Sequence record: LR756500.1
Length of the DNA: 64,000 nt
Strand: one strand, 5' to 3'
The notes beneath the pieces were generated by a model that was not told the origin of the DNA, did no database searches, and was given only the letters and a program-made list of their open reading frames with translations. Below are positions 1-57,047 of the stretch, in pieces (position 1 is the first letter of the stretch; each line of letters starts with the position of its first letter). The position numbers and the translations under genes were made by a program.

Positions 1-123
1 TAAAAGTTTTTCTAATTCTTCTGTTGATAAAGATTCGAAATTATCTGTTGTTTCGTATTCAAATAACACTTTCTCATCACCATTACTAGAATTCATTACT
101 GAATCTCCGGCGTTTCCTTGCAT
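1..123 (-). CDS. 5' part of a gene running off the window edge (MQGNAGDSVMNSSNGDEKVLFEYETTDNFESLSTEELEKLL...); product unknown, possibly the C-terminal half of the split DNA polymerase
   Basis: Manual translation from ATG at 123 is open to position 1 (41 codons). It is not in the ORF track and follows 135..644 closely in the same orientation. Confidence 0.6.
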   Translation of the reverse strand, partial: MQGNAGDSVMNSSNGDEKVLFEYETTDNFESLSTEELEKLL

Positions 124-3689: not shown

Positions 3690-3850
3690 TAAAAGTATTT
3701 GTTTTAATATATATTTGAATATTTTTATAAAAATAAATTTAATTTCATCAAATACTTTTTCTTTCTAAATAATCATTTCTCATTACAGCTATCATATCAA
3801 CAACATCTATAGCTCTAAATATTTCCCATGTTATCATATTATGACTTAAT

Positions 3851-4279
3851 TTACCATATTATAGTTTTCATAAAATTATATGATAGTATCCAATTTTTCA
3901 TATCTTCTAATGTACAGTGTTCTCTAGATGGCCCATAAGGTATCATTCCACAATTAAATACCCAATAACCATTATCTGAATCCCATCTAAAATATGCATG
4001 ATCATCCTTTACTTTTTCAGTATAAATCTGTAATATTTCTAATTGTAATTTTAAAGCATTTTCTTTAGATTCAACAGGTATATTTGGATAAAATGTTTGT
4101 TTTGAAATATCGATATTTCTTAAAACTAAACCTTTATCAACATTAAAATTAATATCTTCTTTATAAGAACTCATTAATTTATGCATAGATATTTTTGCTT
4201 CTTCTTTTGTTATATTACCAATAGGTATTACGAATTTCCTTCTTATTTGATTATAGCCTGTTATATTATAATTAATCAT
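3851..4279 (-). CDS. Hypothetical protein containing a portal-(gp20)-like segment
   Basis: The track ORF 3851..4420 overlaps the nrdJ 3' end, so the likelier start is ATG 4279 (MINYNITGY). RRKFVIPIGNITKEEAKISMHKLMSSYKE resembles the T4-type portal motif RRIFYIDVGN...KAEQYL...M..Y. Confidence 0.5.
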   Translation of the reverse strand: MINYNITGYNQIRRKFVIPIGNITKEEAKISMHKLMSSYKEDINFNVDKGLVLRNIDISKQTFYPNIPVESKENALKLQLEILQIYTEKVKDDHAYFRWDSDNGYWVFNCGMIPYGPSREHCTLEDMKNWILSYNFMKTIIW

Positions 4280-4298
4280 ATTTATATTATATTTAAAT

Positions 4299-5471
4299 TT
4301 AACCTTGACACAGGGAAAATTCGCACGAATGACAATATGTACAACCTTCCTTTTTATAAAGACCTGACGGATCTCCGCATAAAGGACATTTAGTCTCAGA
4401 TAACTTTTCTTCTGCATCACCTTTTAAGTATTTAGATAATGTTCTAGAAATTGCTTTACTAAATGCTACTATAGTTCCTTCAGATTTATTTAATTGTTGA
4501 ACAATGAATTTAATATCAGCACCATGTCTTAGACTAACAGATATCATTCTAGTAAGAGCTTCTTCTTCATCTCTTTCGAATAATTCATTAACATTATCTA
4601 GTACTCCATTACCTGATATTTCTAAACTATAATGACCTCTTTTAACTTTTGTTAGAATAGCGTCTTTTATATTTTTAGATATACTTATATTTTTCTCTTT
4701 AAAAGCAAATACTTCATAAGGTTCATTATCCATTAGTCCTACAATTACGACATAATCGTGTCCCTTTGCTGTAATATGATGTATATTACAAGGAAGAGAT
4801 TTAGGTCTAATAGGAGCTTCAGTTTTAATTATTTTTTCTTTTTGTTTTTTATTGCTAACAAGTACTCCTGATCTTGAACCTTCTCTATAAACAGTTAATC
4901 CTTTACATCCTGATTTCCATCCCGTCTCATATACCTTAGATACCATATCTTCAGTTGCATTTTCTGGCAGATTTGTCGTCGAACTTATAGAATGGTCTAT
5001 CCACTGTTGAATTGCACCTTGCATTTTTACTTTTGCAACCCAATCAATATCTGCAGATGATGCTTTATAATAAGGAGATTTTTTAATTACTTCATCTAAT
5101 TGAGTTTCATTATATAATTTTACTTCTTCTATATTATAATTATTAATTTTTAACCATTTTAAAAATTTAGGATGAAATACTAAATATGTTTCCCATGCAT
5201 CACCTGAAAAATCAGTAAATGAAATATTAACTTCTTTATCGTTTGGATTTACTTTTCTATTTCTTTTATATACTGGAAGAAAAACAGGTTCAATTCCAGA
5301 TGTAGTTTGTGTCATAAGGGAAACTGTATTATGAGATACTATTCCATTATCTAAAATATAATAATGAGTATCTTCTACCTCTATATCCATTGTATAATCA
5401 GTATCCGTAGTTTTTTCTAATATTTCTATTAACTCATATTGTATATTTTCTAAATTAACTATTTCTTGCAT
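4299..5471 (-). CDS. nrdJ: Class II (B12-dependent) ribonucleotide reductase, C-terminal fragment, preceded by split-intein C-half
   Basis: After ...GIVSHN come TVSLMTQTTSGIEP, Q.WIDHSISSTTNLP and KGLTVYREGSR, then a TSCPD-like region and a C-terminal CPLCG...CHSC zinc ribbon. Confidence 0.92.
   Translation of the reverse strand: MQEIVNLENIQYELIEILEKTTDTDYTMDIEVEDTHYYILDNGIVSHNTVSLMTQTTSGIEPVFLPVYKRNRKVNPNDKEVNISFTDFSGDAWETYLVFHPKFLKWLKINNYNIEEVKLYNETQLDEVIKKSPYYKASSADIDWVAKVKMQGAIQQWIDHSISSTTNLPENATEDMVSKVYETGWKSGCKGLTVYREGSRSGVLVSNKKQKEKIIKTEAPIRPKSLPCNIHHITAKGHDYVVIVGLMDNEPYEVFAFKEKNISISKNIKDAILTKVKRGHYSLEISGNGVLDNVNELFERDEEEALTRMISVSLRHGADIKFIVQQLNKSEGTIVAFSKAISRTLSKYLKGDAEEKLSETKCPLCGDPSGLYKKEGCTYCHSCEFSLCQG
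5328..5471 (-). mobile_element. Split intein C-half (IntC, 48 aa)
   Basis: MQEIV...YTMDIEVEDTHYYILDNGIVSHN|T contains intein blocks F and G, the terminal His-Asn and a Thr+1 nucleophile, and has its own ATG. Confidence 0.9.
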
Positions 5472-6589
5472 AATAAATCTTTTATTTTATTTTTTATTTG
5501 TTCTGTAACTAAATTTATATTAATTAATTCTTTTTCCCATATTATTATAATATCAGATTTAAATTTATCTTTTATAATATTAATTCGTCTTTTATCTCTA
5601 TTTCGTATTTCATCATATATGTTATCTTTATAACATTCTATTTCTGGATTTTTATGCCAATAATCACCATATATTTCAATAACTAAATTAATATCTTTAA
5701 TATAAATATCAGGTTTAATTATTTTAAATTCTCCATTTCCAATATAAAAAGTATATTCATTTTCACCATAATAAATTTTATTAAATATTTTATTATATTC
5801 ATTATAAATATATTCACCTATTAATATAGAAAGTTTAGAATATGGTAATCTTTTAGCTTTTTTAATTAATAATTCAGAATACCATTTTTCTCCGTGTTTT
5901 TTAATTAAATTATCCTTTGAATTTCCAAATTTTAAACATTCTTTAAGTTTGTTATATTTTTCATTTCCTAATTCAACACCAAATTTATTAATATAATTTT
6001 CTAATGTATTAGATTTTTTAGCATTTATTTCTTGCCATTTTATTTTTCCTAACTCACCATATTTACTTATTAACTTATCTAATGATGAGGTATTTTGACG
6101 TTTTCTTAAACATTCTTTTGCTTTTTCAATAGAATCTGTTCTTTTTATCCAATATTCTAATGTTGTGGATTTTTCTCTTTTATTGTATGATGAATTGGGA
6201 TCATTTTTAATATAATCTTTAACTGCACATCTTTTTCTAAATAAATCATATCTTTCTCTACCTAATATTTCTCCATATCTTTCAATAAATCGTTGTAAGG
6301 ACCCAGCCGTTTTTTTATTTTTATTATTCCATATTATTAATCCTTTTTCATTTCCATATTTATCTAAATAATATTGTTTAGATGAATAATATTTACACTT
6401 TAATTTATATTCTTTATATTTTTTATTTCCTTCTATTTCACCGTATTTTAGTATATACTTTTCTAAACTTACTCCTCTAATAAATTTATGATATAATTTA
6501 TATGCTTCTTCAATAGAAAATTTATTAATTAATTCATTCCATTTACTAGGATATGTTTTAACATCTATTCCTTTTAACATCTGCTCCAT
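5459..6589 (-). CDS. Free-standing homing endonuclease (KYG-repeat N-region plus Vsr/DUF559-like PD-(D/E)xK domain) inserted within the fractured nrdJ
   Basis: Repeated Y..KYGE..G motifs and C-terminal KPDIYIKDINLVIEIYGDYWH. It lies between the two intein halves and overlaps the IntC start by 13 nt. Confidence 0.8.
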   Translation of the reverse strand: MEQMLKGIDVKTYPSKWNELINKFSIEEAYKLYHKFIRGVSLEKYILKYGEIEGNKKYKEYKLKCKYYSSKQYYLDKYGNEKGLIIWNNKNKKTAGSLQRFIERYGEILGRERYDLFRKRCAVKDYIKNDPNSSYNKREKSTTLEYWIKRTDSIEKAKECLRKRQNTSSLDKLISKYGELGKIKWQEINAKKSNTLENYINKFGVELGNEKYNKLKECLKFGNSKDNLIKKHGEKWYSELLIKKAKRLPYSKLSILIGEYIYNEYNKIFNKIYYGENEYTFYIGNGEFKIIKPDIYIKDINLVIEIYGDYWHKNPEIECYKDNIYDEIRNRDKRRINIIKDKFKSDIIIIWEKELININLVTEQIKNKIKDLLCKK

Positions 6590-6621
6590 TATTTAATTTT
6601 ATTTTATATATTAATGGAGCA
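6582..6621 (-). promoter_or_regulatory. RNA hairpin sequestering the endonuclease start codon, with a candidate late promoter in its loop
   Basis: 10-bp perfect stem, plus-strand tgctccatta (6582-6591) / taatggagca (6612-6621). One arm contains the ATG at 6589. AATATATAA reads on the minus strand at 6604-6612. Confidence 0.65.
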
Positions 6622-6625
6622 ACTG

Positions 6626-6973
6626 TTAATTTATTTTTTTAATTATTTTATCACCTACTTTTAATTCTTCAGCATTCTTCCAAATTGCTTCTTTATCATT
6701 AATTAAAACTAAAAATTTATGAACTTTACTTGTAAAAATATTGTAATCTTTATCTAATTTAAATCTATAACCCTCTGTTTTTCCATTCCAATATAATTTT
6801 GTTATTTTATTATAGTTTCCATTTATATCTAAAATATTAATAGGTTTAATTAAATCAAACCATATATTATTTTTAGTCTCAAGTTCTTTAATATTAACAC
6901 CATTTATATTAAATATTTCTTCTAATGAAATATCACCTATATCAGTTTTAATTATAGCATCTTTTTCTAAACA
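6626..6973 (-). mobile_element. Split intein N-half (IntN, 115 aa)
   Basis: Starts at Cys1 (TGT 6973-6971) after APTG, with block A CLEKDAIIKT, block B TSKVHKFLV and W..AEELKVGD, then a stop. It has no endonuclease domain. Confidence 0.9.
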
Positions 6974-8470
6974 TCCCGTGGGGGCGGCTGTTAGTAAACC
7001 TATATTTCTTCTTCCGTGTTTAATTAACAGTTCACTTACTTCAGAATCTGCTTTAATTAATCTTTGAATAAATGAATTTCCAATTTCTTTATCTCCATCA
7101 TATATTTTAAAAGATCCTCTATCTTTTGCTAATAAACATGATGATTTATAAACTTCAATTGCCATTATTTTATGAACTTCTTCAGAAAATTTTATAGCAT
7201 CATCTGTAGCATAAGTTAAACCTAATGCAGCTAACATGTCTCCTTCAGCAGTAATACCGATTCCAACTCTTCTGCCTAATAAAGCTTTTTCTTTAATTTT
7301 TTTCCATAAATTTAACTCTATTAATTTAACTTCATCAGATTCTTTATCATTATTAATTTTTTCTAATATTTTATCAATTTTTTCTATTTCTAAATCAATA
7401 ATATCATCTGATATTTTTACTGCATATTTTATATGTTCTTTAAATAACTCAAAATTAAATTTTGCTTCTTTTGTAAATGGATTATCTATATATGAATATA
7501 AATTTATAGCAAGTAACCGACAGCTGTCATACTTACATAGGGCGATTTCCCCGCACGGATTTGTAGAAACAGATTTAAATCCAACATCTGCATAACAATC
7601 TGGCACTGATTCACGTATTATAGTATCCCAAAATAATATTCCAGGTTCAGCTGATTTCCATGCGTTGTGAATAATTTTTTTCCATAATTTTTTAGCATCT
7701 ATTTCTTTAACTATTTTTGCTTTTTCTTTTTGTACGTTTATGGGATATTGTTGAAAATATGATGTATTATTTAAAACTGCCGTCATAAATTCATCATCTA
7801 ATTTAACTGATATATTAGCACCAGTAACTTTACCTTCTGCTAATTTAGCATCAATAAATTCTTCTGTATCTGGATGTTTTATAGATATGCTAAGCATAAG
7901 GGCCCCCCTTCTGCCGTCTTGAGCTACTTCTCTAGTAGAATTAGAGTATCTTTCCATAAAAGGAACTATACCTGTAGATGTCAGTGCAGAATTTTTAACA
8001 GCAGATCCTTTTGGTCTAATATGACTTAAGTCGTGACCAACACCGCCTCTTCTTTTCATTAATTGTATTTGTTCTTGATCTATTTTTAAAATAGATCCAT
8101 AAGAATCACCTTCATCACCAATGACAAAACAATTAGATAATGAAACAATTTGTAAATTATTTCCAATACCCGACATAGGACCGCCTTGTGGAACAATATA
8201 CTTAAAATCCTTAATTAATTCAAATATTTTATCTTCTGATATTGGATTAACATAATTATTTTCTATTCTTGAAATTTCACCTGCTAATCTGTGATGCATA
8301 TCATCAGGTGTTTTTTCATAAAATTTTCCATCAGAATCTTTAATAGCATATTTATTTAAAAATACTTTTGCTATCATTTCATCTCCTTTAAAATATTTTA
8401 AAGATTCTTCTAAAGCTTCATTATAAGTATACGTATTAATAACTTCTTTATTAATTTTAGTCATTTCCAT
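6626..8470 (-). CDS. nrdJ: Class II ribonucleotide reductase, N-terminal fragment, ending in split-intein N-half
   Basis: LSNCFV, RRGGVGHDLS, QDGRRGALM, TNPCGEI and RRVGIGITAEGDMLAALG, then LLTAAPTG followed directly by intein CLEKDA and a TAA stop. Confidence 0.92.
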   Translation of the reverse strand: MEMTKINKEVINTYTYNEALEESLKYFKGDEMIAKVFLNKYAIKDSDGKFYEKTPDDMHHRLAGEISRIENNYVNPISEDKIFELIKDFKYIVPQGGPMSGIGNNLQIVSLSNCFVIGDEGDSYGSILKIDQEQIQLMKRRGGVGHDLSHIRPKGSAVKNSALTSTGIVPFMERYSNSTREVAQDGRRGALMLSISIKHPDTEEFIDAKLAEGKVTGANISVKLDDEFMTAVLNNTSYFQQYPINVQKEKAKIVKEIDAKKLWKKIIHNAWKSAEPGILFWDTIIRESVPDCYADVGFKSVSTNPCGEIALCKYDSCRLLAINLYSYIDNPFTKEAKFNFELFKEHIKYAVKISDDIIDLEIEKIDKILEKINNDKESDEVKLIELNLWKKIKEKALLGRRVGIGITAEGDMLAALGLTYATDDAIKFSEEVHKIMAIEVYKSSCLLAKDRGSFKIYDGDKEIGNSFIQRLIKADSEVSELLIKHGRRNIGLLTAAPTGCLEKDAIIKTDIGDISLEEIFNINGVNIKELETKNNIWFDLIKPINILDINGNYNKITKLYWNGKTEGYRFKLDKDYNIFTSKVHKFLVLINDKEAIWKNAEELKVGDKIIKKIN

Positions 8471-8484
8471 TATTATTTATTTTT

Positions 8485-10428
8485 TTATTTTTTATATTCA
8501 AATTTATAGTTACCTGTTCCAAAACACCTATAACAACCTCTATCATGCATTATATCTACCTCTGTTAAACNNNNNNNNNNNNNNNNNNNNNTTAATTTAT
8601 CCTTCCTAAACTTAAACCTATTCTCCCTTAAACCATCTACTACCCACCAATAATTCAAACCAGTATGCCCTATATATTTAAAACCTAATTTTATATATAA
8701 GTTATCTTGCTCATCAACCGTCCAATCACAATCGGCATAACTTATTATTCTATTCGGTATATACTCCTTTATAAAATGCTTAAATAAGCGACTAGCTCCA
8801 CCAATAACTGAAGTATCTAATTTATTAGCAAATCTAGTCAACTCATACTCTCCTTCTTTAGCTACTTGATTTAAATTTTTACGTAGTTTACCAAAGGTCA
8901 TTAATGATACTAACNNNNNNNNNNNNNNNNNNNNNNNNNNNNNNNNNNNNNNNNNNNNNNNNNNNNNNNNNNNNNNNNNNNNNNNNNNNNNNNNNNNNNN
9001 NNNNNNNNNNNNNNNNNNNNNNNNNNNNNNNNNNNNNNNNNNNNNNNNNNNNNNNNNNNNNNNNNNNNNNNNNNNNNNNNNNNNNNNNNNNNNNNNNNNN
9101 NNNNNNNNNNNNNNNNNNNNNNNNNNGAGTTTAACTCCTTTTTCTTTAGCTAATGCTGTCTTATTTAAATGATAATCTTTAAGTTTATTGAATTCATTGT
9201 GCCAATAAACTCCATTATGTTCTATTCCAATCTTATTATTTGGTATATAAATATCTATCTCATTACCATTTAAAATAGTTCGATCTTTTTTAGTTTCTAT
9301 ATTTAAATCATTTATAAATAATTTAATCTCTTCTTCATTTTTACTTTCAAAAGAATTTGTAGAATTTAAAGGATTACATATNNNNNNNNNNNNNNNNNNN
9401 NNNNNNNNNNNNNNNNNTAAAAGATGTATATTTATATTTTTATAATCTTTGCATTCACTACAATAAAAATCCAATGTTCCATTTTCATATACCTGTTTAA
9501 TATCTAAATTATTATATCGTTCTTTTATTTTATTTTTATGTTTTTCAAATATAATTTTTTTAAAATATATACTCTTAAAAATAATTTTGTTTTTGTATCG
9601 TTCTAAATTAGTATCCTTAATTTTTTCTTGTATATCTTTACACTGTGCTACATTTTCAACTCCATAACGTTCTAAATTAGTATCCTTAATTTTTTCCTTA
9701 ATATCTTCTCTTTGTAATGTATTTTCAACTCTATAACGTTCTAAATTAGTATCCTTAATTTTTTCTTGTATATCTTTACACTGTGCTACATTTTCAACTC
9801 CATAACGTTCTAAATTAGTTTTTTTAATTTTTTCTTGTACATCTTTTCTTTGTATAGCATGCTCTACTCCATATAGTTCCAAATTATTTTTAATAATCTT
9901 ATCTTTTATATCTTTATATTGTAAACTACATTCAACTCCATATTTTTTANNNNNNNNNNNNNNNNNNNNNNNCTTAACATCTTTTGCTTGAAAACTATGC
10001 TCAACTCCATATCGTTTTAAAAATGTTTTTTTAATTTTTTCTTTTACAATATTACTTGATCCTGAATTTTCACATCCATATCTTTCTAAATTAGTTTTTT
10101 TAATTTTTTCTTGTACATCTTTTCTTTGTAAAACAGATGTAATTCCTTCATTTTTTAAAAGTCTTTCTTTAGTTTTTATATGTGCACATTTTAAACATGA
10201 ATATTTATCTGTTAATTTATTGGTCTGTGAAAAATATTTATTATATACAACTTTTTTTTCAATACCACAATAATCACATTTAACATTAATTTTAATACCA
10301 CAGCCGGAATTTAAATTATTAATATCTAAAATTATTATTGATTTTATTTTAATATCTAAATATAAATTTTTATAAAATCTTATATTATTTGAAGTAATAT
10401 TAATTTCAACATTTTTATCTAAAATCAT
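8485..10428 (-). CDS. Hef-like homing endonuclease with tandem KTNLERYGVEN repeats
   Basis: Zn-ribbon CDYCG...CLKC, about 23-aa repeats, EIDIYIP...GIEHNGVYWH nuclease motif and C-terminal YELTRFANK...VIGGASRLF...IISYAD domain. Interrupted by four N-runs. Confidence 0.7.
   Translation of the reverse strand: MILDKNVEINITSNNIRFYKNLYLDIKIKSIIILDINNLNSGCGIKINVKCDYCGIEKKVVYNKYFSQTNKLTDKYSCLKCAHIKTKERLLKNEGITSVLQRKDVQEKIKKTNLERYGCENSGSSNIVKEKIKKTFLKRYGVEHSFQAKDVKXXXXXXXXKKYGVECSLQYKDIKDKIIKNNLELYGVEHAIQRKDVQEKIKKTNLERYGVENVAQCKDIQEKIKDTNLERYRVENTLQREDIKEKIKDTNLERYGVENVAQCKDIQEKIKDTNLERYKNKIIFKSIYFKKIIFEKHKNKIKERYNNLDIKQVYENGTLDFYCSECKDYKNINIHLLXXXXXXXXXXXXICNPLNSTNSFESKNEEEIKLFINDLNIETKKDRTILNGNEIDIYIPNNKIGIEHNGVYWHNEFNKLKDYHLNKTALAKEKGVKLXXXXXXXXXXXXXXXXXXXXXXXXXXXXXXXXXXXXXXXXXXXXXXXXXXXXXXXXXXXXXXXXXXXXXXXLVSLMTFGKLRKNLNQVAKEGEYELTRFANKLDTSVIGGASRLFKHFIKEYIPNRIISYADCDWTVDEQDNLYIKLGFKYIGHTGLNYWWVVDGLRENRFKFRKDKLXXXXXXXXLTEVDIMHDRGCYRCFGTGNYKFEYKK
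9585..9840. repeat. About 69-bp coding tandem repeat (KIKDTNLERYGVENVAQCKDIQE units)
   Basis: cgttctaaattagtatccttaattttttc recurs about every 69 nt; more diverged copies extend to about 10130. Confidence 0.8.
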
Positions 10429-11843
10429 GCACTTTTTCTTTTTTCTAATATATGTTTAATTTCATCTGCTTCCATTTCATATTTAAACATTTCTTTTTTA
10501 TATTCTTTTCTTTGACTATAAAGTCTATTCAATATACCTTTTAATATTGAATCTTTTGTACTATATACACACCCATTAACTGCTACAATTCTATCATCTT
10601 GTTTATATTCATTTCTTACATCAGGATCAACTTTCATTATAAATGAATCAGGAGATACATTCATCTGTCTCATAATCGAAGGATAAAGTGATGCAAAATC
10701 AAAGCAAGCTACTGCTTTATGACGTCCTGTAATTGGTTTTTTAACATAAGCACCTTCATATTGTTCATCTTTATTTTCTTTTCTAATATTAAAATCTGAG
10801 GCTAATATTTTGTTATCTTTTAAAAATTCTCTTGCTAATAATGATTCAGTAATTGAAACTGGTGAATCAGCTTTATAAATACTAATTTTACATAGATTAG
10901 CTAATGTTAAAACTATTTCCATTGTTTTAAGTTTTTCATGAATTAGCATTACTAATAATGTATCAACTGCAGTATAAAATACATATTTTTCAAAATCTTT
11001 TTCTAATAGATCTTTTAAACTTCCATCGTAACTAATTTTCTTTAAACCTACTACTACCTCTGCTACCGTATTTAATTTAAAATTTTCTTTGACATCTACA
11101 CTTCTATCCCATGCTTTATAAAGATCCATATAGTCCATTATTCCAACATGTAGTGGAATATCATTATTTTGATTATTTAATTTTCCGCTTGGTGATGCTA
11201 TAGAAGGATCAATTCCTAATCGACGAGCTCTATTTATAATATATTTCCAATCATAACCAATTACATTCCAACCACTCATCATTGGTATTTTTTTCTGTAC
11301 TATTTCACTTAAAAAAGTATACAGCATGTCATATTCTGTATCAAACTTTTTATAAATAAAGGTAAATTTTTTACCAGTTTGTTCAAAGTATTTATCTATA
11401 CTAGATTGAACATTAGCAATACTTTTTGCAGGCAAATTCAAATGTGAAAATACGATTACTTGATTTTTAGGAGTTGTAAAAGTAATTGTAGTAATTTTTT
11501 CTTTTGCAGAATCTGCTTCTGGAAATCCATCAACAATTTCAACTTCTATATCAATAAAATAAATATCTGGATAGTGTGTTCCAAAAATTTCATCTTGATC
11601 TTCTTTAGATAATCTTTCAAATAATTCTGTTATTGAATGTTTATTTAAAAATTTTGAAGTATATTTTTTAACAGCACGTCCATCCCAATTTGTAAACTTC
11701 TTATCTTTTGATTTATCACTTTCACGACAAATCATCCAATTAGATATATTTTTTAATGGTATTGTTTTAAATGAAACTTTTCCTTCACTATTATAATAAG
11801 ATATAATTAATGAATTACCTTCATTCTCAATGTCTAATAGCAT
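10425..11843 (-). CDS. Family-B DNA polymerase, N-terminal part only (gp43A-like)
   Basis: Exonuclease motifs DIE, SGWN and Y...D, plus polymerase region DFASLYPSIM and L..LYSQRKEYK. It ends before the KxxxNSxYG and YGDTDS motifs. Confidence 0.88.
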   Translation of the reverse strand: MLLDIENEGNSLIISYYNSEGKVSFKTIPLKNISNWMICRESDKSKDKKFTNWDGRAVKKYTSKFLNKHSITELFERLSKEDQDEIFGTHYPDIYFIDIEVEIVDGFPEADSAKEKITTITFTTPKNQVIVFSHLNLPAKSIANVQSSIDKYFEQTGKKFTFIYKKFDTEYDMLYTFLSEIVQKKIPMMSGWNVIGYDWKYIINRARRLGIDPSIASPSGKLNNQNNDIPLHVGIMDYMDLYKAWDRSVDVKENFKLNTVAEVVVGLKKISYDGSLKDLLEKDFEKYVFYTAVDTLLVMLIHEKLKTMEIVLTLANLCKISIYKADSPVSITESLLAREFLKDNKILASDFNIRKENKDEQYEGAYVKKPITGRHKAVACFDFASLYPSIMRQMNVSPDSFIMKVDPDVRNEYKQDDRIVAVNGCVYSTKDSILKGILNRLYSQRKEYKKEMFKYEMEADEIKHILEKRKSA

Positions 11844-11862
11844 AAAATTTAAGATTTAAATA

Positions 11863-24433: not shown

Positions 24434-26152
24434 TTATTTATATTCGATATCATCAAATAAAATAGGTATACGTTTCTTGAATTCATCTAAAAGTGGACGC
24501 ATTAATTCTCTCATTTGAGGATGGGCTGCATTTGCAACTCTTAGTTTAAAAATATGTCTCCAATCTCTAATATTAGTTGACATATTTATTTCAGTCTTTA
24601 ATGAATTTGGTAATACTGATCTTGCTTGTTGTGGAGACCATTTGTAATCATTCATTAATTTATTATAATATTGTTCAGATTTTAACATTGATGTTAACCA
24701 TTGTACATTTACCGAAGGATAATCAAAATCTTTTGCTAAAGCATTAACATCAAATTCTGTATAAATATGTTCTTTAATATCTAACCATTCTGGTATAATA
24801 AAAGTAATATTATCATCTTTACTATAATTACAATAACGGGTACTATTATGAACTATAAATCCATTAGCAATATAATTAGAATATGGTTCTTTCATTTCTA
24901 TATCATAAGTATCTTCTACACCAATATATGTAATACTTATAATTTCATCTATTATTCCTTTAACACCTATATGCCAACCGTGATGTAATAAATTATGACA
25001 ACTACAGCATACTTTTGTAAGATTTATATCTTCATTATTGTTTAGATCTTTATCTTTATGATGAACTTCTAATTTAATATTACTTCCACATAATTCACAT
25101 GAAAATATATTTTCTTTCTTAAATCTTGCTTCATCTCTACCTCTCAGTCCGCCACTCCAATTAGAATTATCTTCTCCAAATCCATTGTTATGATGGTTAA
25201 GCCTTAACGAATTTGCTTGCCTTTTAACTGATACATTATTATCCTCGGTTAATCCTTTATTCCAGACAACTCTCCCATCATTGTACTGTTTTTGTATTGT
25301 ATTTTTAATTTTAATATATGAATCAGCAGTATGATTTTTATTGTACTTATCTTTATCTTTATCATTTTTTCGTTTAACAAAAATATTAAGTGTTTGAAGT
25401 TTAGTAAGAATTGTTCTATATGGAATAGAAAATTCTTCACTAATTTCCGTAGGAGATAACCCAACTATATTATATAATCTAATTAATTCATTATCAGATA
25501 ACGTGCATAAATTAGGTCTGCCATTAACTATAACCTTACTACCAATACTTAAATTTCGTAATTCTTCATATTTGTGAGTACTTGTCAAAAATCTATGAGT
25601 ATTAGTACACTTTATTTTATACCCCAATTTAGTAACAACTTCAAATATTACATTATTACCCTTAAAGAATATAGCATTAAAATGATTAGATACTATTTCA
25701 TTATTTTCATTTATACTTCGTAAAGTTAATGTCTTATTATGAGTTCTGTCATAATTTGTACCATGTTCTTGTCTTTCATATAATTCTTTGATAGTAATAT
25801 TTTTATTAGAGGTTGACTTAATAATAGTATCACCTGTTACACATTCTTGGGCAAAACTAGCTATTCTGTGTCTAACTAATTCATGACTAACTCCTCTATC
25901 ACATGTAAATTTAACAGTAATATTACCACCGAATTCTAACATTGCTTCGTGACCCATTTTAATAAGTTTAGCAATAAGTACTCTTGCTGATATAGCATCT
26001 AAATCATATAATTCACCATTAGGTGTTCTATGACCTATTTCTATTTTACCTTCGCTTTTATAACAAGTTCTAGCCGCTATTTCAATTTCTTTTAAAATAC
26101 TTTCTCCATCAATAGGAGTTAATATTTCATATTTTGATTTGATTAAATTCAT
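24434..26152 (-). CDS. thyX: FAD-dependent thymidylate synthase containing an intein
   Basis: GHEAMLEF, RGVSHELVRHRIASFAQE|intein|STRYCNY, ARSVLPNS and WRHIFKLR...AHPQMR. Confidence 0.92.
   Translation of the reverse strand: MNLIKSKYEILTPIDGESILKEIEIAARTCYKSEGKIEIGHRTPNGELYDLDAISARVLIAKLIKMGHEAMLEFGGNITVKFTCDRGVSHELVRHRIASFAQECVTGDTIIKSTSNKNITIKELYERQEHGTNYDRTHNKTLTLRSINENNEIVSNHFNAIFFKGNNVIFEVVTKLGYKIKCTNTHRFLTSTHKYEELRNLSIGSKVIVNGRPNLCTLSDNELIRLYNIVGLSPTEISEEFSIPYRTILTKLQTLNIFVKRKNDKDKDKYNKNHTADSYIKIKNTIQKQYNDGRVVWNKGLTEDNNVSVKRQANSLRLNHHNNGFGEDNSNWSGGLRGRDEARFKKENIFSCELCGSNIKLEVHHKDKDLNNNEDINLTKVCCSCHNLLHHGWHIGVKGIIDEIISITYIGVEDTYDIEMKEPYSNYIANGFIVHNSTRYCNYSKDDNITFIIPEWLDIKEHIYTEFDVNALAKDFDYPSVNVQWLTSMLKSEQYYNKLMNDYKWSPQQARSVLPNSLKTEINMSTNIRDWRHIFKLRVANAAHPQMRELMRPLLDEFKKRIPILFDDIEYK
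24845..25843 (-). mobile_element. Cis-splicing intein (333 aa) with HNH endonuclease
   Basis: Starts CVTGDT, has block B CTNTHRF, HNH CELCG...LEVHHKD...N....CCSCHNLLH, and ends TYDIEM...YIANGFIVHN|S. Confidence 0.9.
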
Positions 26153-50036: not shown

Positions 50037-52139
50037 TTATCTAATTATATCTACATCAAATGTATAGCTTTGACTATTTAAACAAATTAATTCAAATATA
50101 GGTCTTGCACTTAATAAATCTAAATATGATATAGTTGCTATTTTTAATCCATATTGTCCATTTCCAAATACATTTGCTTTATCTGTATATATTTCTATAC
50201 TGTATTCTTGTAAAAGTAATTCTGTAGGAAATACAAATTTAATAATTTGACCCTTTTCAAAACTTCTATTAGCATCATTTATATAAATTTTAAGAGTATT
50301 TAAAGCAGTATTAATTGTATATAATCTACACATATTAGTAAATTCCAATAACTCAAAATATACTCTAATATCAGATCTATTTAAATCTAACTCATGATTA
50401 AATTCAGCTGAAATTTCTTTATCATTTATATCATACGGAATAACAATATTATATTCTTGATTTACGTTGTTTATAATAACTCTATTTGGAACACTTTTAT
50501 CTAATCGTACTCCTTTTCCACTTTGTAATACATTTGTATTATAAGTTAAATTAATTGAAAGATTTCCACTTATAATATTTTGTATCTCGTCAGAATTAGC
50601 AGCTATTAAATCTAATAATGTTGTACTACTAGCAAAAGCTAATTGAGCATTATTTAATTGTGTTTGTAAATCTTCAATTCTAGTTTCTAATGTTTGAATT
50701 GAATCTAATGCATAAGATGTATTTTCTAAATCTGTAACTCTTATTTTTAAATCTCCTAATTCTAATATTCCATTTGTTAATATAACTGAAGCCTCCTGTA
50801 ATTTAGCAGTAGCTTCAGAAAATAAACCCATTGAAAAATTATTATATTCATTTACTATTGTAAATACTCCACCTTGTTCAATAGAAACATCTTGTTTAGT
50901 ATTAAGACTTAATCCATATGAATTTCCATTTAATTTAGTAATTTCATTCGGTTTATATTTTTTAAATCTTGGTATATAACCACCATCACTAGTAGATTTA
51001 ACATTATCTAAAAATAATATTCCATAAAGATTTGTAGCTCTATCTAATACTTGTGTTGCATCAAAAATATCATAATAAATAAGAACGGCATTAAATTCAA
51101 AATTTTTAGATTTTGCCATTGAATTATATTGTTGAATATTTTGAATATTAGAATCATTAATAATATCATAATAACTTTCAGGTTCAAAATCAACAGAAAT
51201 TCCGTCTAATTTTGATCTTTTATATGCAACTCCACCACTTTGTCCAGCTACATAATCATCATAATATTTTTTAATATTAACATTAGTAGGATCTGTAAAT
51301 GAATTTAGTTCTGTAAAATAACTATTTACGTTACCGCCACTAATTGATTCATTATGCCAATTAGCATTAGGATCAGTATAGTCAACTGATGCATCATAAT
51401 CATAAAAAGCATTAATGCTTAATCCATCAGGATGTATAGTACCTGAAGTTCTTCCTTGTAAATATTCTCCAGATCCTGTTATAATAAGATTAGGTTTATA
51501 ATTAGTATCTGAAAGTGCATCAAATAAAACCATTGGTGTATTACCAACTAATGTAGGTATTCTAATATAAACTTCCGTATACGTTTCTCCTGCAAGTTCT
51601 ACACTATTCATTACATCTAATTCACCTATATATGTTACAACTTTTTGGTATCTTGTTGTTCCTGTTAAATTTTCATCTTCTTCTACAAATCTAGGTGCTC
51701 CTATATTAGTATTTACTTCCGTAGAAGTAGCTTCTCTAAATCTTATTGCACCTATTTCTTTTAACCATTTAAAAAATATTCTTTCAGAAGTAGATTTCTT
51801 AGATGATGCATCATAATCAGTATCAGATAATACTAAAGCTTCCATATTTAAAACGTAATTTTGAAAACTTTGTATTAAATCAACATTTGGATCACCCGTT
51901 AATCCACCATTAAATAAAGTACCATCAATAGTTTCTAATTGAACATAATTTTCATAATGTCCAAATGTAGCAAAATCTAATTTACTTATATTTGGAATAT
52001 TCAAACATACAAATTTTGAAAATTCAAGTTTTAAATTTTCATTTGCTTTTATTTTTGTAAAATCTCGAGCAGCAGAAGAAAAAGCATAGAAAGTTCCGCC
52101 TTGTATATTTAAATTCTTAATAAGTGGACCGGATGCCAT
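50037..52139 (-). CDS. Putative virion structural protein
   Basis: 700-aa ORF with a central coiled coil; structural context. Confidence 0.55.
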   Translation of the reverse strand: MASGPLIKNLNIQGGTFYAFSSAARDFTKIKANENLKLEFSKFVCLNIPNISKLDFATFGHYENYVQLETIDGTLFNGGLTGDPNVDLIQSFQNYVLNMEALVLSDTDYDASSKKSTSERIFFKWLKEIGAIRFREATSTEVNTNIGAPRFVEEDENLTGTTRYQKVVTYIGELDVMNSVELAGETYTEVYIRIPTLVGNTPMVLFDALSDTNYKPNLIITGSGEYLQGRTSGTIHPDGLSINAFYDYDASVDYTDPNANWHNESISGGNVNSYFTELNSFTDPTNVNIKKYYDDYVAGQSGGVAYKRSKLDGISVDFEPESYYDIINDSNIQNIQQYNSMAKSKNFEFNAVLIYYDIFDATQVLDRATNLYGILFLDNVKSTSDGGYIPRFKKYKPNEITKLNGNSYGLSLNTKQDVSIEQGGVFTIVNEYNNFSMGLFSEATAKLQEASVILTNGILELGDLKIRVTDLENTSYALDSIQTLETRIEDLQTQLNNAQLAFASSTTLLDLIAANSDEIQNIISGNLSINLTYNTNVLQSGKGVRLDKSVPNRVIINNVNQEYNIVIPYDINDKEISAEFNHELDLNRSDIRVYFELLEFTNMCRLYTINTALNTLKIYINDANRSFEKGQIIKFVFPTELLLQEYSIEIYTDKANVFGNGQYGLKIATISYLDLLSARPIFELICLNSQSYTFDVDIIR

Positions 52140-53343
52140 AATTGTAATTTTTATTATTTATTATATATTCATTTTTATAAACCCAGAAGTACCCATTATA
52201 TATACTTTTATCAGATATTGATTTCCTAATTTTTATTAAATTATAATTAAGCTCTTTTATTTCTCCTATGTTATACCATTCTTTTACTATATTACTATTA
52301 ATATCTAATTGTAAAATAGGTTTAGATGAATGGTTATTTTTTCCTTTTTTACCATACATTCCATTTTTACTACCCATTTTAGATTCGCTTAATTTTTTTC
52401 TATATTCTGTACTATTCATTGCATTTCTCCATGCTTCTGAATTCTTAATTGCCTCACTCATTTTTTTGCTATATTCTTTACTTTGCATAGCAATCTTGTG
52501 TGCCTCAGAATTTTTAATTATTTCAGATCTTTTTGTTCTATATTCTTCACTTTGCATAACAATCTTATGTGCATTTGAATTTTTAAGTGCTTCACTTTGC
52601 TTTTTTCTATTAGCATCTATACTATAATATTTTTTTAAACTATTACTTACTTTTTTATTGCGCTCTTTACTTCGCATAGCGATCTTATGTGCCTCAGAAT
52701 TTTTAATAATTTTACTCATTAATATACTTCTTTCTTCACTATGTATATAAGTTTGAAATTTTTCTGAGTTTTTTAATGATTCACTTATTTTTTTACCATG
52801 TTCTTCACTATGTATGCTATTTTGAAATTTTTCAGAATTTTTTAATGATTCGCTTAATTTTTTTCTATATTCTGTACTTTTCATAAGAGTCTTATGAATT
52901 TCAGAATTTTTTAATCCATCTGAAAGCTTTTTTAAATATACTGGATCTAAATATAATTGTTTTCTTATTATTGAATTTTTTAATCCATCTGAAATTTTTT
53001 TTCTTATTTCTTCGCTCGGATTTAATTTTATTAAACTTATTTTTTTCTTAGTTTCTTCACTATGCTTTAAGTTAGTCATAGGAGCTTCACCACCTAAAGA
53101 AATGTTATAACCTATACTTTTATTACTTGAATTATAATAAGATATCCAATATATTTCTCTATCATTTAAATACTCTCTTTTTTCACATTCCTCAAGTATT
53201 TCTTTCTTAAAGTTTTCTTTTCCATATTTATTTATTGCTTTTATAATAAGCAAACCTGATCCTAAATATTCAGGATCATTTTTGTATGATTGTCCAATAT
53301 AAATTTTATTGTTAATCAAATTTGTAGTTTTATAAATTATCAT
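52117..53343 (-). CDS. GIY-YIG homing endonuclease with NUMOD3-like repeats and C-terminal NUMOD1-like HTH
   Basis: IIYKTTNLINNKIYIGQS...YLGSG...E.YWI, GYN...GG, HSEETKKKIS and about 10 KKLSESLKNSE-type repeats. Confidence 0.9.
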   Translation of the reverse strand: MIIYKTTNLINNKIYIGQSYKNDPEYLGSGLLIIKAINKYGKENFKKEILEECEKREYLNDREIYWISYYNSSNKSIGYNISLGGEAPMTNLKHSEETKKKISLIKLNPSEEIRKKISDGLKNSIIRKQLYLDPVYLKKLSDGLKNSEIHKTLMKSTEYRKKLSESLKNSEKFQNSIHSEEHGKKISESLKNSEKFQTYIHSEERSILMSKIIKNSEAHKIAMRSKERNKKVSNSLKKYYSIDANRKKQSEALKNSNAHKIVMQSEEYRTKRSEIIKNSEAHKIAMQSKEYSKKMSEAIKNSEAWRNAMNSTEYRKKLSESKMGSKNGMYGKKGKNNHSSKPILQLDINSNIVKEWYNIGEIKELNYNLIKIRKSISDKSIYNGYFWVYKNEYIINNKNYNYGIRSTY

Positions 53344-53418
53344 AATGACATATTTTATTATATATCATATAACCAACATGTAATTGTATAATTTATATAT
53401 AAGTGCTATGTGACTTAT

Positions 53419-54036
53419 TTATACTATTGAATATAAATGTCCTCCAAGTATATACCATTCTTTAGTTCCAACATCGTTTGTAATACACAATAATTTTACA
53501 GTCTGTCCAACAGTATTTAAATCTATTTGACTTGTTCCCATAAAAGGAACACTACCTCCTGCTATAATTGATACTGTACCACTATTAGCTTTATCATATA
53601 CAAAAGTAATTTCTTGTCCTATTTCGCCTTCAAATAATTCAATTATTACAGGTTGTGTACCATTAGGATTTGTAACTCTATAAATACCATACTCTGGTAC
53701 AGAGGTTCCGGAACCAATACTTGTATCATCACTTATTGTATTTGAAAAAATATTATTTGATAATATTTTTCCTGTTAAATTTACATCTCCATTAATAGTT
53801 ATATCAGTATTTAATGAAGAGTTTGATGCTGATATAGATAATAATGTTGTATTTAATCCAACTACAAGATTATCACTAGATATACTATTCATATTATCTA
53901 AGATTGCACTTGATGGATCAAAATATGTTTCAATTAAATTTATCTCATTTTTTAAAACAGTAAAATTTGTATTAATTACTGTTCTAGATCCAGATAATGA
54001 ATCTGTACCTAAAATTTCCGTTACGGCTATACTCAT
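53419..54036 (-). CDS. Putative tail/baseplate structural protein
   Basis: The N-terminal I.EILGTDSLS.SR..IN.NF motif matches the start of the 35150..40519 fibre (IKEILASDNVS..V..LN.NF). Confidence 0.6.
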   Translation of the reverse strand: MSIAVTEILGTDSLSGSRTVINTNFTVLKNEINLIETYFDPSSAILDNMNSISSDNLVVGLNTTLLSISASNSSLNTDITINGDVNLTGKILSNNIFSNTISDDTSIGSGTSVPEYGIYRVTNPNGTQPVIIELFEGEIGQEITFVYDKANSGTVSIIAGGSVPFMGTSQIDLNTVGQTVKLLCITNDVGTKEWYILGGHLYSIV

Positions 54037-54050
54037 AGTTTATATTTTAT

Positions 54051-57047
54051 TTATTCTATTATTATTAAATTTTTATCAATTTGTTTTCTATTTCCATTAG
54101 TATCTTCAATTGCTAAAGAAATTGTATAATTTCCATTTTCAGTGAACATATAATTTAATTGCTTTTGGTTAAAATATATATTAGAAAAATTATCGTTAGT
54201 ATTGTTTTTTATAGTCCAAAGTGGTTTAGTTTTTCCAGGAATTTTACATTTATCATAAGAAAAACTAATATATGTAAATGGTTTTAAAATTTTATATGTA
54301 TCTAACAAATTTAAATTATCCCATGTTGGATTTGTAACTCGACTATTTTTCCATTTCTCAATAATTACTTTTCCTGGAGTACCAGATATTGAATTAATAT
54401 CAGCTCCTTTTCCAGCAAATTTAGCTACTGCTAAAATATATTTAACTTCATTATTTTCATCTAATACTGCATTATATACATATCTAGAAAATATAGTATC
54501 TTTACTATTATTCAATTCCGTTGCAGCATTAATTAAATCATAGCATTTAAAGGTATGTACGTGGGTATTAATACCGTCATCTAGGATTAAATCAGAACCA
54601 TAGTATATATTGGTAATTTTAAAATACGTATTGCTATCACCGCTTACATCCGTTGAATCCCACCATAAATGTGTAGTGTCATTCCATAATCCATCAGTTA
54701 AATTATCCCAGAAATAAGGACCTGGATAACTTATTTCATCATAAGCAGTAAATGTTTGTATATATGTTTTAGGATCAATATTATTAGGTAATGAATTTGC
54801 TCTATCTAAAACATCATACCAACTTAAATCACAATTATTCCATATTGTATCTTGAACTAATGGTAAATCCCAGTATGATCCATATTTATCCCAGGAAGTA
54901 TTAGCATTTTTCCATTCATATTTTTCATTTCTATATTTATAAAATCCTATAAAATCACTTTCTTTATCTTCAACAGTAATATGATTATATTTTATATCAT
55001 AAGACATATGATTAAACGTATCATATAATTTTAATTCTATTGTATATTCTCCTACATAAGGAAGATTTACTGGATATACTTCATAATCTGCAATTGCACC
55101 TCTTACATTATGATAAAATTCTGGAGTGGTATCAGCAGATTTGAAAACAGTCCATTCTATATCGTAAAAGCTACCTCTCAGAATACTATCCCAAGTATAC
55201 ATATTAGATAAAGAAATATTTTTTGTTTTAAAATCAGTATATATACTTCCTATATTATCAACACTTGTTACAAAGTTAAAATGTATTTGTTGTGATGCAA
55301 CATTTATTCCTTTAACTCTAACAGCATATCCTAAATCTGTTTCTACTACAGTAGGATAAAATCGTTCCCATGGAAGTCCATCACTAGTTATTTTTGTCCA
55401 CCATAATACAACTAAATTTTCACTTATTTCTTTACTTGTATCTCCAGGTTGTGCTTGATATTCAATTTCTTGTCCAGAAATAGTTTCACTAATTTTAAAT
55501 ATTGTATATGACGTAACACTAATAGGTTCAAAATCATAAATATGATTTGCATCAGTATCTAAATTATTCCAAGTTAACATATAAGAATTATCCCAAGTTA
55601 TATCAAAACTTGTATTTTCTAAAACTATTGGATATCCTACTGGTATGCCTTCTTTATCTGGAAATTGTTCTACTGTATTTAAATTTGGATAATAATTTTG
55701 AAAATATGCTAATAAAACATTGGAGATATCTCCAAGTGTTATATCAGTAGCTTGAATTAATTCTCTAAAATCATGAGGAATATTCCATCCAGTATTTTCA
55801 GGCCATTGTAAATCTTCTATATTTCTCAAATCTATTACATAACCTGATGTTGAAGGGAGTACTTTAAATTTAGGATGTATACCAACATCAATATGTTGTC
55901 TTTCACTTATACATGGAAGAACTATTTCTTTTATCTTTGTAAAATAATCGGCTTCTGCTGTAATGTCTAATATTCTAGCATTTAATGGTAAGAAATGATT
56001 TTTTAAAATCTTTTGCAAACCCATAAACTTTATTAAAGCTTCTTCAATAGTATAATCGAAAGACTCTTCTGTTATTGGAATATCATATTCATCATAATAT
56101 CCTTCTTTATGTCTATTTATTCTAAATGATAAATTAAACATATTAGTTTTTCTATATGAATCACTTTTATCATTTATAATAGCGTCATTTAATTTAATAG
56201 AATTATCTTTTATACTAATAGATTTATTAGGAATATACTTACCATACTTAGAAGAATAAATATTTATATTTTTCCAATATTCTTTTATTACTAAATCATT
56301 ATATCCAAAGTATTTAATACTATTTATAAGTGCTTTATATGATCCAATATAAGGAACAATTTTATGGCCTTCTAATAATATTTCTTTTCTTTTTTCATTT
56401 AGAATAATATTATCTGATAGTTCTTCGTATATATCAGATTCTTTAAACATTGATAAATCATTTGCTATAAAATCATAACCCAAATTTTTAGTTAAGACTT
56501 TTAATCTTTCGTCTTCATCGACAGTTTCACCATAAAACTTTATTTGTGCAAATATATTTCCAGTATTTAAATCTCTTAATAATAATACTCTTTCATAAAT
56601 ATCTTCTTCATCAGAATTAATTGCTACATATAAAGATATAGGTTCATTATTAATAACATCAGTTATTTTTAATTCATCTATATTTAATGTTTCAGTTGGA
56701 TCAAGATCCAATTCTATTTCTAAAGTATCTATATTTTCTATAGTAGGAGAAGTAGTACTTTGATTAAATTGAAATAAAAATATTTTTAATGTACTATCAC
56801 TATACCACTCAGCTTGTATATTTTTATTAGTAGCAGATGGATCACTAATATGAGGTTTACCGTATTTTATAACAGAATTAGTAGTGACAAATTTTTCAAC
56901 TATAAATAGACTTTCTACCTCATATAAATTAGTAGAAACCTTAGGTAAAAATAAATTACCTATCCATTGATTACTTTCTGTATCAAATTCAAAATTGCAA
57001 TTTTGACCCAGCTTATTAAAAAAAAATAAATTTTTATAATCAGTCAT
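54051..57047 (-). CDS. Baseplate wedge-type protein with PKD-like domains (gp7-like position)
   Basis: IGSYKAL.NSIKYFGY motif; GEYTIELKLYD and GNYTISLAIED PKD-like ends; adjacent to the gp6-like gene. Confidence 0.55.
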   Translation of the reverse strand: MTDYKNLFFFNKLGQNCNFEFDTESNQWIGNLFLPKVSTNLYEVESLFIVEKFVTTNSVIKYGKPHISDPSATNKNIQAEWYSDSTLKIFLFQFNQSTTSPTIENIDTLEIELDLDPTETLNIDELKITDVINNEPISLYVAINSDEEDIYERVLLLRDLNTGNIFAQIKFYGETVDEDERLKVLTKNLGYDFIANDLSMFKESDIYEELSDNIILNEKRKEILLEGHKIVPYIGSYKALINSIKYFGYNDLVIKEYWKNINIYSSKYGKYIPNKSISIKDNSIKLNDAIINDKSDSYRKTNMFNLSFRINRHKEGYYDEYDIPITEESFDYTIEEALIKFMGLQKILKNHFLPLNARILDITAEADYFTKIKEIVLPCISERQHIDVGIHPKFKVLPSTSGYVIDLRNIEDLQWPENTGWNIPHDFRELIQATDITLGDISNVLLAYFQNYYPNLNTVEQFPDKEGIPVGYPIVLENTSFDITWDNSYMLTWNNLDTDANHIYDFEPISVTSYTIFKISETISGQEIEYQAQPGDTSKEISENLVVLWWTKITSDGLPWERFYPTVVETDLGYAVRVKGINVASQQIHFNFVTSVDNIGSIYTDFKTKNISLSNMYTWDSILRGSFYDIEWTVFKSADTTPEFYHNVRGAIADYEVYPVNLPYVGEYTIELKLYDTFNHMSYDIKYNHITVEDKESDFIGFYKYRNEKYEWKNANTSWDKYGSYWDLPLVQDTIWNNCDLSWYDVLDRANSLPNNIDPKTYIQTFTAYDEISYPGPYFWDNLTDGLWNDTTHLWWDSTDVSGDSNTYFKITNIYYGSDLILDDGINTHVHTFKCYDLINAATELNNSKDTIFSRYVYNAVLDENNEVKYILAVAKFAGKGADINSISGTPGKVIIEKWKNSRVTNPTWDNLNLLDTYKILKPFTYISFSYDKCKIPGKTKPLWTIKNNTNDNFSNIYFNQKQLNYMFTENGNYTISLAIEDTNGNRKQIDKNLIIIE

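Follow-up and report, generated by a model that had tools for sequence, protein, structure and literature searches.

A putative mobile split intein and a Vsr-like endonuclease gene interrupt nrdJ in an uncultured phage

Introduction

The closest described systems to the one reported here are NrdJ-1 and NrdJ-2, two fractured nrdJ loci from the Global Ocean Sampling metagenome (Dassa et al. 2009, PMC2677866). We have analysed a stretch of 64,000 nucleotides (nt) from sequence record LR756500.1 (the window, meaning this stretch at its whole length), in which positions 4299 to 8470 appear to hold another fractured nrdJ gene, that is, a phage ribonucleotide reductase (RNR) gene in two pieces that carry the two halves of a split intein, with an endonuclease gene between them. 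A first-pass annotation made from the letters alone had read the locus in this way, and had stated that such an architecture was already on record, nrdJ included, as is indeed the case (PMC2677866).

Like NrdJ-1 and NrdJ-2, the locus has a phage-type class II RNR encoded in two adjacent genes, a split intein and a free-standing endonuclease in between, and again a hairpin precedes the endonuclease start and the 3′ end of the endonuclease gene overlaps the downstream gene. The position of the break, however, is different. In NrdJ-1 and NrdJ-2 the insertion falls beside the thiyl-radical Cys, one residue beyond the NrdA site, at a location that the authors call new (PMC2677866), whereas the window intein lies at APTG/T (here and below the slash marks the junction), ~190 residues downstream, and leaves the thiyl motif whole. 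NrdJ-1 also has an obligate Ser at the +1 position, in contrast to the Thr of the window intein and the Thr or Ser of allelic loci. Because its NPCGE motif is uncut and the break is so far downstream, the window intein can be regarded as a different allele rather than a copy of NrdJ-1; the two are set apart here by the described insertion site and not by a sequence alignment. In addition, among the 150 relatives of the N-intein (IntN) listed, none is preceded by the thiyl-site motif NPC.

For the endonuclease, a described counterpart is I-Bth0305I, the prototype of the EDxHD (Vsr-like) homing endonucleases (PDB 3R3P; Taylor et al. 2011, PMC3239194), which belongs to a group I intron in phage recA and carries two NUMOD-2-like motifs (PMC3239194). 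Both proteins have a C-terminal Vsr-type domain with the Glu, Asp, His, Asp set, preceded by an N-terminal (in our case presumed) binding region, but the window endonuclease is encoded between intein halves and carries seven helical repeats of ~27 amino acids (aa). In Aeromonas phage Aeh1, too, a free-standing homing endonuclease (mobE) divides the gene of an RNR large subunit, nrdA (PMC3045599), and a hairpin limits translation of that endonuclease (as cited in PMC2677866). Unlike the present locus, that of Aeh1 has no intein, and its RNR pieces assemble non-covalently (PMC3045599).

With the split inteins Npu/Ssp DnaE, gp41-1 and Aes123 PolB1, the window intein shares the canonical split position, an IntN of ~100–120 aa, a C-intein (IntC) of ~35–50 aa and opposite charges on the two halves, although its sequence similarity to characterised split inteins is weak. 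In DnaE, moreover, the two halves come from distant genes, and no endonuclease is placed between them. A literature search for which InBase and many journals were out of reach turned up no paper on a split intein at this RNR site, nor on one in huge phages. The intein allele and its insertion site would thus be what is new here, the mechanism being already known.

Results

One RNR gene in two pieces

Between 8470 and 4299 there are three minus-strand open reading frames (ORFs), encoding NrdJ-N with IntN, the endonuclease, and IntC with NrdJ-C (Table 1). The first (8470..6626, 614 aa) comprises NrdJ residues 1–499, with the end ...LLTAAPTG, followed by the intein Cys and the remainder of a 115-aa IntN closed by TAA. 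The second (6589..5459) is the separate 376-aa endonuclease ORF, and the third (5471..4299, 390 aa) consists of a 48-aa IntC ending in HN/TVS and 342 aa of NrdJ, in which Thr+1 (codon 5327-5325) is followed by TVSLMTQTTSGIEP.... The boundaries of all three are as the first-pass annotation had drawn them.

Table 1. Features of the fractured nrdJ locus (window positions; all on the minus strand)
Feature	Position	Size	Details
nrdJ N-extein	6974..8470 (-)	residues 1-499	ends ...APTG; Pfam Ribonuc_red_lgN and Ribonuc_red_lgC matches
N-intein (IntN)	6626..6973 (-)	115 aa + TAA stop (6628-6626)	Cys1 codon 6973-6971; block B ...TSKVH... (His85)
RNA hairpin	6574..6629 (-)	17 pairs	5′ arm from the IntN stop codon; 3′ arm with GGAG and both candidate endonuclease starts
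Free-standing homing-endonuclease gene (putative)	5459..6589 (-)	376-aa ORF	follows a 36-nt spacer
N-terminal endonuclease region	5852..6472 (-)	seven tandem helical repeats, ~27 aa each	from AlphaFold model and repeat cores
Vsr-like (EDxHD) nuclease domain	5462..5845 (-)	residues 249-376	Asp294, Glu305, Trp311-His312, Asp332
Overlap of endonuclease ORF end and IntC ORF start	5459..5471 (-)	13 nt	different frames
C-intein (IntC)	5328..5471 (-)	48 aa	block F ...TMDIEVEDTHYY..., block G ...GIVSHN
nrdJ C-extein	4299..5327 (-)	342 aa + stop	rest of RNR barrel, TSCPD region, Cys-rich tail

From the alignments, it is clear that the outer ORFs correspond to one gene cut at one codon, without loss or duplication. 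The Pfam model Ribonuc_red_lgC matches the first ORF with its profile positions 1–390 (up to residue 499) and the third with positions 391–523 (from residue 49 onwards), and the model of the RNR barrel therefore breaks exactly between positions 390 and 391. When the exteins are joined, an 841-aa NrdJ is obtained that shows no residue gap at APTG/TVS relative to the uninterrupted NrdJ of two other phages, namely LR745206 (54% identity, ...IAPTG/SVSILTQT...) and Bacteroides phage DAC19 (44% identity, ...VAPTG/TVSLMAQT...). The earlier expectation that joining at the splice junction would restore the APTGT.S motif thus agrees with the gap-free alignment of the exteins. The N-extein is collinear with the uninterrupted NrdJ of loci L001 and L002.

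The assignment of the outer ORFs to class II (B12-type) ribonucleotide reductase NrdJ is based on the Pfam RNR barrel with its thiyl Cys loop, on a match to phrog_84, and on the best DNA matches, which are annotated as vitamin B12-dependent RNR and come from crAss-like and Bacteroides phages; the use of a B12 cofactor is assigned by homology. Within the N-extein the thiyl-radical motif NPCGE (residues 304–308, Cys306) is intact, and so is the Cys-rich tail at the C-terminus. The 3′ end of nrdJ-C shares 122 nt with a 189-aa ORF called from GTG (window 3851..4420, minus strand). This ORF matched nothing in PHROGs, gave no more than a weak Pfam match below threshold, and probably has its real start further downstream.

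The intein halves

The Pfam model Intein_splicing is likewise divided between the outer ORFs, with positions 10–93 matching the end of the first and positions 116–155 the start of the third. All class 1 intein residues are present, including Cys1, the SKVH motif with His85, ...DIEVEDTHYY..., the His47-Asn48 pair and Thr+1. As far as can be judged from these motifs, no residue that class 1 splicing chemistry requires is missing from the two halves, and the NrdJ halves would be expected to be spliced in trans. The net charge is −11 for IntC and +1 for IntN.

These residues are strongly conserved among relatives. Cys1 is invariant in 35 aligned IntN homologues that are 32–55% identical to the window IntN, the block B His85 is found in at least 90% of them, and among the IntN matches listed every one aligned from intein position 1 has a Cys there. 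On the IntC side, the His-Asn pair is invariant and the +1 residue is always Thr or Ser (10 aligned sequences), while in six loci neither the TMD.EV...H.Y block nor the terminal SHN varies. The Thr+1 nucleophile that the first-pass annotation had noted is therefore present in the window but is not a fixed property of the family, as both Thr and Ser occur at this position in homologous loci and in uninterrupted alleles.

A HMMER search with the 115-aa IntN against 1.84 billion representative sequences gave at least 150 matches at E ⩽0.001, 31 of them at E ⩽1e-10. In nearly all of those listed the alignment stops a few residues from the C-terminus of the protein, meaning that they are split N-inteins too. 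The ~30 best matches are preceded by the same RNR motif, ...RRNI..T.AP[TA]G/C, and more distant ones by KPSG/C, MPSES/C or PTGN/C, which we take to be the equivalent loop of other RNR subtypes. A word-index protein search with the IntN region returned only itself and one relative, and was less informative than the exhaustive HMMER search.

Among inteins of known structure, the IntN family profile reached the Ssp DnaB mini-intein at E 3.6e-5, then Mxe GyrA, PI-PfuI and gp41-1 (E 0.019), with the DnaE split inteins at E 0.4–0.7. The single IntN sequence had PI-PfuI as its sole PDB match (E 0.042), and the window intein is for this reason considered to be far from every structurally characterised intein.

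The two halves are predicted to bind each other. In the modelled IntN-IntC complex, the interface score ipSAE was 0.86 in each of three runs and 0.00 for the best of three controls, the contacts agreed between runs to at least 97%, and the predicted local distance difference test (pLDDT) of the partners was at least 84. In the calibration set, 51 of 78 solved complexes and 2 of 108 mismatched pairs attained this mark; since split-intein complexes have already been solved, it expresses likeness to known complexes and is not a proof.

The endonuclease between the halves

Most homologues of the 376-aa ORF begin at the position of its Met4, and the true start is for this reason probably Met4 at window 6580 (giving 373 aa) and not Met1 at 6589. 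The protein was modelled by AlphaFold with a mean pLDDT of 91 as an N-terminal repeat region and a C-terminal alpha/beta domain (residues 249–376). Repeat cores of the type [ST]L..[FY]I.KYGE..G..KY are found at residues 48, 77, 104, 150, 176, 202 and 231, and the repeats, which together span residues ~40–246, are all-helical in the model (pLDDT ~90) with nearly invariant glycines. This region is presumed to be the DNA-binding part of the endonuclease; Pfam detected no family in it.

The nature of the C-terminal domain was revealed by the family profile and the structural model together. A profile of 47 homologues matched the Vsr structures (1ODG, 1VSR and 1CW0) and the catalytic domain of I-Bth0305I (3R3P) in the PDB at E ~3e-3, and its alignment with Vsr pairs the catalytic motifs PDF... 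and ...G.(F/Y)WH. With VIA-align, the modelled nuclease domain gave a Z score of 11.9 for 3HRL, 11.4 for 3R3P (97/97 residues) and 11.2 (1CW0) and 10.9 for Vsr. The residues of the EDxHD set (PMC3239194), including Trp311, are conserved, the four catalytic ones in most of the 47 homologues, with Asp294 in 46, Glu305 in 45, His312 in 46 and Asp332 in 40. Overall there are 64 homologue clusters; Pfam DUF559 or PF18741 is found in the distant ones, one of which bears the source label very-short-patch repair endonuclease.

Less sensitive searches did not reach this relationship. A Pfam scan of the endonuclease gave nothing at E ⩽0.01 apart from one weak sub-threshold match taken as spurious, a single-sequence search against the PDB found nothing, and Foldseek with the whole protein had no match at E ⩽0.001, though Vsr and 3R3P were among its top-ranked entries; the Vsr link is thus through the family profile and the second aligner. 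On this evidence the endonuclease is, by sequence profile and model, Vsr-like, as the first-pass annotation had suggested; it is of the Vsr/EDxHD type with all four catalytic residues kept, and would be expected to cleave DNA.

Hairpin and overlap around the endonuclease gene

The hairpin that begins at the IntN stop codon has a folding energy of −18.2 kcal/mol (z −5.4), and none of 200 shuffled sequences folds as well. Both candidate endonuclease starts, 6589 and 6580, fall inside its 3′ arm. Hairpins of other sequence are present at or just before the called endonuclease start in L018, L019, L021, L022, L032 and L039; the one in L016 is weak, and L103 has none. L016 also has an 8-nt overlap at the same endonuclease/IntC position as the 13-nt overlap of the window.

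Both features have been described for fractured genes, where 15 of 16 loci have such hairpins, which the authors relate to the one attenuating Aeh1 endonuclease translation, and where an endonuclease 3′ end may overlap the downstream gene (PMC2677866). In the window, the hairpin would probably keep endonuclease translation low, or couple it to the upstream ORF's translation, and the overlap would probably couple translation of IntC-NrdJ-C to that of the endonuclease.

Occurrence at the nrdJ site

The three-gene layout recurs at the same nrdJ codon in at least eight other phage contigs (IMG/VR and JGI) from unrelated samples, namely L016/L017, L018, L019/L020, L021, L022, L029, L092 and L103, in which the exteins are 45–63%, IntN 42–55% and the endonuclease 29–45% identical to those of the window. 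The closest endonuclease relatives (29–45%, from IMG/VR and JGI) all lie between an IntN and an IntC at this codon; more distant ones are free-standing beside an intact nrdJ (L027/L028, L046 and L055) or are located in other fractured genes.

Related phages also carry nrdJ uninterrupted at exactly this codon. Among the best 80 IMG/VR nrdJ loci by junction match, 71 are uninterrupted and 7 fractured as in the window; this search used an alignment of IntC plus the extein start, and a locus search with the single C-half protein as query found nothing. L055 is uninterrupted, though its exteins are 64% and 54% identical to those of the window. Such patchiness, together with the keeping of three ORFs over a large divergence, is as predicted for an element that is mobile but functional.

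Two further arrangements occur at the same site. P0022/L179 has a contiguous mini-intein (...APTG/C...SHN/TIS), and in P0021/L178 IntN is fused in frame to the endonuclease and followed by a separate IntC ORF. The latter may be a transitional form linking free-standing with nested endonucleases, or else result from a sequencing error. The fused ORF (1125 aa, L178 2125..6738, on an ENA contig) also contains a mini-intein at the thiyl-Cys site.

Discussion

Weighing of the alternatives

We interpret the locus as a fractured gene, with a mobile split intein and a homing-endonuclease gene inserted in the phosphate-loop motif APTG/T of phage NrdJ, and would put the probability of this reading at roughly 0.8. 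It is consistent with the adjacent host ORFs on the same strand, the terminal positions of IntN and IntC, the endonuclease ORF between them, the hairpin and the overlap, as well as with the uninterrupted alleles of related phages.

It is conceivable, though improbable, that the intein halves no longer splice and act only as association domains that hold the NrdJ pieces together non-covalently, as in Aeh1 NrdA, a fragmented phage RNR for which such an assembly is documented (PMC3045599). Cys1, the block B His, the His-Asn pair and the +1 hydroxyl would not be needed for association, yet they are invariant or nearly so at 32–55% identity, and without splicing the conserved loop APTG/TVS would stay cut and carry bulky appendages. 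More doubtful still is a decaying nrdJ, inactivated by the invading endonuclease and left as functionless relics. Phage RNR genes degraded by mobile elements have been reported, for example in Campylobacter phages (PMC3653736), but all three ORFs in the window are open and of full length, the RNR has kept its NPCGE motif, its complete barrel and the Cys-rich tail at its C-terminus, and at least eight other phage contigs retain the layout even at extein identities of 37–63%. Furthermore, no second large-subunit RNR gene was detected among the window ORFs scanned against Pfam and PHROGs, a scan that did not extend to the whole genome.

The source being a metagenome assembly checked with contigs only, one may also ask whether the stops are errors that hide a contiguous intein, with the endonuclease nested in it, in the true genome. 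This we consider very unlikely indeed. A 10.6-kb Logan contig from the likely source sample, made by a different assembler from the same reads, covers 3900-8467 with 0 differences, no gap and a depth of ~46, short contigs from a second sample of the same study agree without differences over ~5685-6931 only, and there is no N inside 4299..8470. The spacer holds three more in-frame TAA codons beyond the IntN stop, IntC and the endonuclease are in different frames, and the same ORF boundaries recur in unrelated samples. Contig joints were looked at as well; all had short sides (20–37 letters) and low depth and were treated as other organisms or repeats. Splicing at the RNA level, which the first-pass annotation had named together with an assembly artefact as a way in which its reading could fail, was rejected because Rfam gave no group I or II intron over 3700-12000 at E up to 1.

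Several observations nevertheless weigh against the fractured-gene interpretation or limit its support. The Logan contig checks the assembler and not the biology, because it probably derives from the same sample and reads, and as all support is from assembled contigs, minority alleles with a contiguous intein or none would be invisible. Among the public runs that hold the stretch there is no RNA run. Promoter-like matches numbered 61 against 67.5 expected in shuffled sequence, which is no enrichment, and the promoter/terminator scan gave no terminator. Finally, the predicted IntN-IntC complex may reflect memory of solved split-intein complexes.

Proposed mechanism

If the locus is a fractured gene as proposed, the acidic IntC (−11) and IntN (+1) would associate into one HINT fold, Cys1 would perform the N-S acyl shift, the resulting thioester would be attacked by Thr+1, Asn48 would cyclise, and an O-N shift would yield an 841-aa NrdJ with a native APTGTVS loop. 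The endonuclease would cut the intein-less nrdJ of co-infecting phages, presumably near the junction codon, and repair would copy the whole IntN-endonuclease-IntC cassette into the cut allele.

The phage and its other interrupted genes

The stretch is 100% identical to LR756500.1, an unannotated 462-kb record named "uncultured phage", and is also contained in a 429-kb IMG/VR record. The public runs that hold it are groundwater metagenomes. The guanine plus cytosine content is ~23%, and the minus strand carries nearly all genes. Homing-endonuclease-like elements abound in the genome, and the loci described below (all on the minus strand) were observed alongside nrdJ.

The gene for the family B DNA polymerase, polB, is also fractured by a split intein (G000:C1 51280..54680, with window 1..123 and the remainder beyond the window start). 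Its middle piece with the N-intein is at G000 53910..54680 (junction ...YIDTD/SIQKE..., the N-intein nucleophile probably being Ser1, to judge from this junction), a 567-aa endonuclease is encoded inside the split intein at 52214..53917, and the C-intein with the last piece is at 51280..52221 (...ILVHN/SCYLAF). Splicing would restore the DTDS motif. In the PDB the N-intein matches 9HTH (E 8.6e-6), an entry deposited under the name 'DNA-directed DNA polymerase'. The first polB piece (window 10425..11843, 472 aa) comprises the exonuclease domain and the start of the polymerase domain, has no intein at its end, and is matched from end to end by phrog_2062, which comprises half-length polymerases. 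At ~10.3 kb downstream the next piece begins, the intervening genes including the fractured nrdJ as well as an ATP-grasp gene and a dUTPase-like one. A 647-aa endonuclease-like ORF (window 8485..10428, partly N-masked) overlaps the end of the first polB piece by 4 nt; it has DUF7487 repeats (...NLERYGVEN...), matches phrog_3339 and phrog_559, and is a paralogue of the 567-aa polB-intein endonuclease, with 47–67% identity in two blocks when compared with its masked letters.

Two more fractured genes lie outside the window. One, a clamp-loader/RFC-like AAA+ gene (G000:C1 10633..13378), is cut at ...VVILDE/CLQEDE, followed by a 443-aa ORF with a D...E.K type motif and an IntC ending in ...GICTHN/CDGAS; its intein charges are reversed, with −6 on IntN and +6 on IntC. 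The other is a putative topoisomerase II-like gene (G000:C1 425877..428599, ...YHHGD/CGDYDT) and has a 300-aa Vsr-like endonuclease ORF followed by an IntC ending in ...KIVVHN/SALNQ (IntN −9, IntC +3). Pairwise identities among the four split inteins of the genome are 24–38% for the N-halves and 26–40% for the C-halves.

Contiguous inteins were noticed too. The thymidylate synthase ThyX (window 24434..26152) has one of ~320 aa (...FAQE/CVTGDT ... FIVHN/STRY) with an HNH-like motif inside, and a GKT-motif gene outside the window (G000:C1 301594..302977, putatively PhoH-like) has a mini-intein (...ISSHN/TGKT), with a 120-aa Vsr-like ORF just upstream and overlapping it. A 408-aa homing-endonuclease-like ORF (window 52117..53343, phrog_314) is found among tail and baseplate genes.

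A broader proposal would be that this phage (~430–460 kb) depends on four separate trans-splicing reactions (in nrdJ, polB, the clamp-loader-like gene and the topoisomerase II-like gene, each with its own split intein and endonuclease) with mutually orthogonal pairs, forming a natural orthogonal set, and that the nrdJ intein belongs to a large, mostly split family, for which we found no description, at equivalent RNR loops (APTG/C, KPSG/C, MPSES/C and PTGN/C). We regard this proposal as evenly balanced between being right and being wrong. Among the four pairs, two C-inteins are acidic and two basic, and one pair is probably cysteine-less.

Implications

Fast split inteins that do not cross-react are sought after as tools for protein ligation. 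Most fast split inteins need a Cys at the +1 position, and NrdJ-1 is valued because it needs a Ser there instead. A distinct family in which the +1 residue is Thr or Ser, comprising many natural variants and having three co-resident and presumably orthogonal partners in the same genome, would offer a defined set of candidates, and the use of the nrdJ pair as an orthogonal tool, which had been raised in the first-pass annotation, is plausible.

The site is also informative about how such loci may arise. Three states are seen at one position, namely a contiguous mini-intein, three separate genes and an IntN-endonuclease fusion, and these are the intermediates that have been proposed for the entry of endonucleases into inteins and for gene breakage. 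For the phage itself, the locus would show the tolerance of a huge phage for selfish elements in its replication genes.

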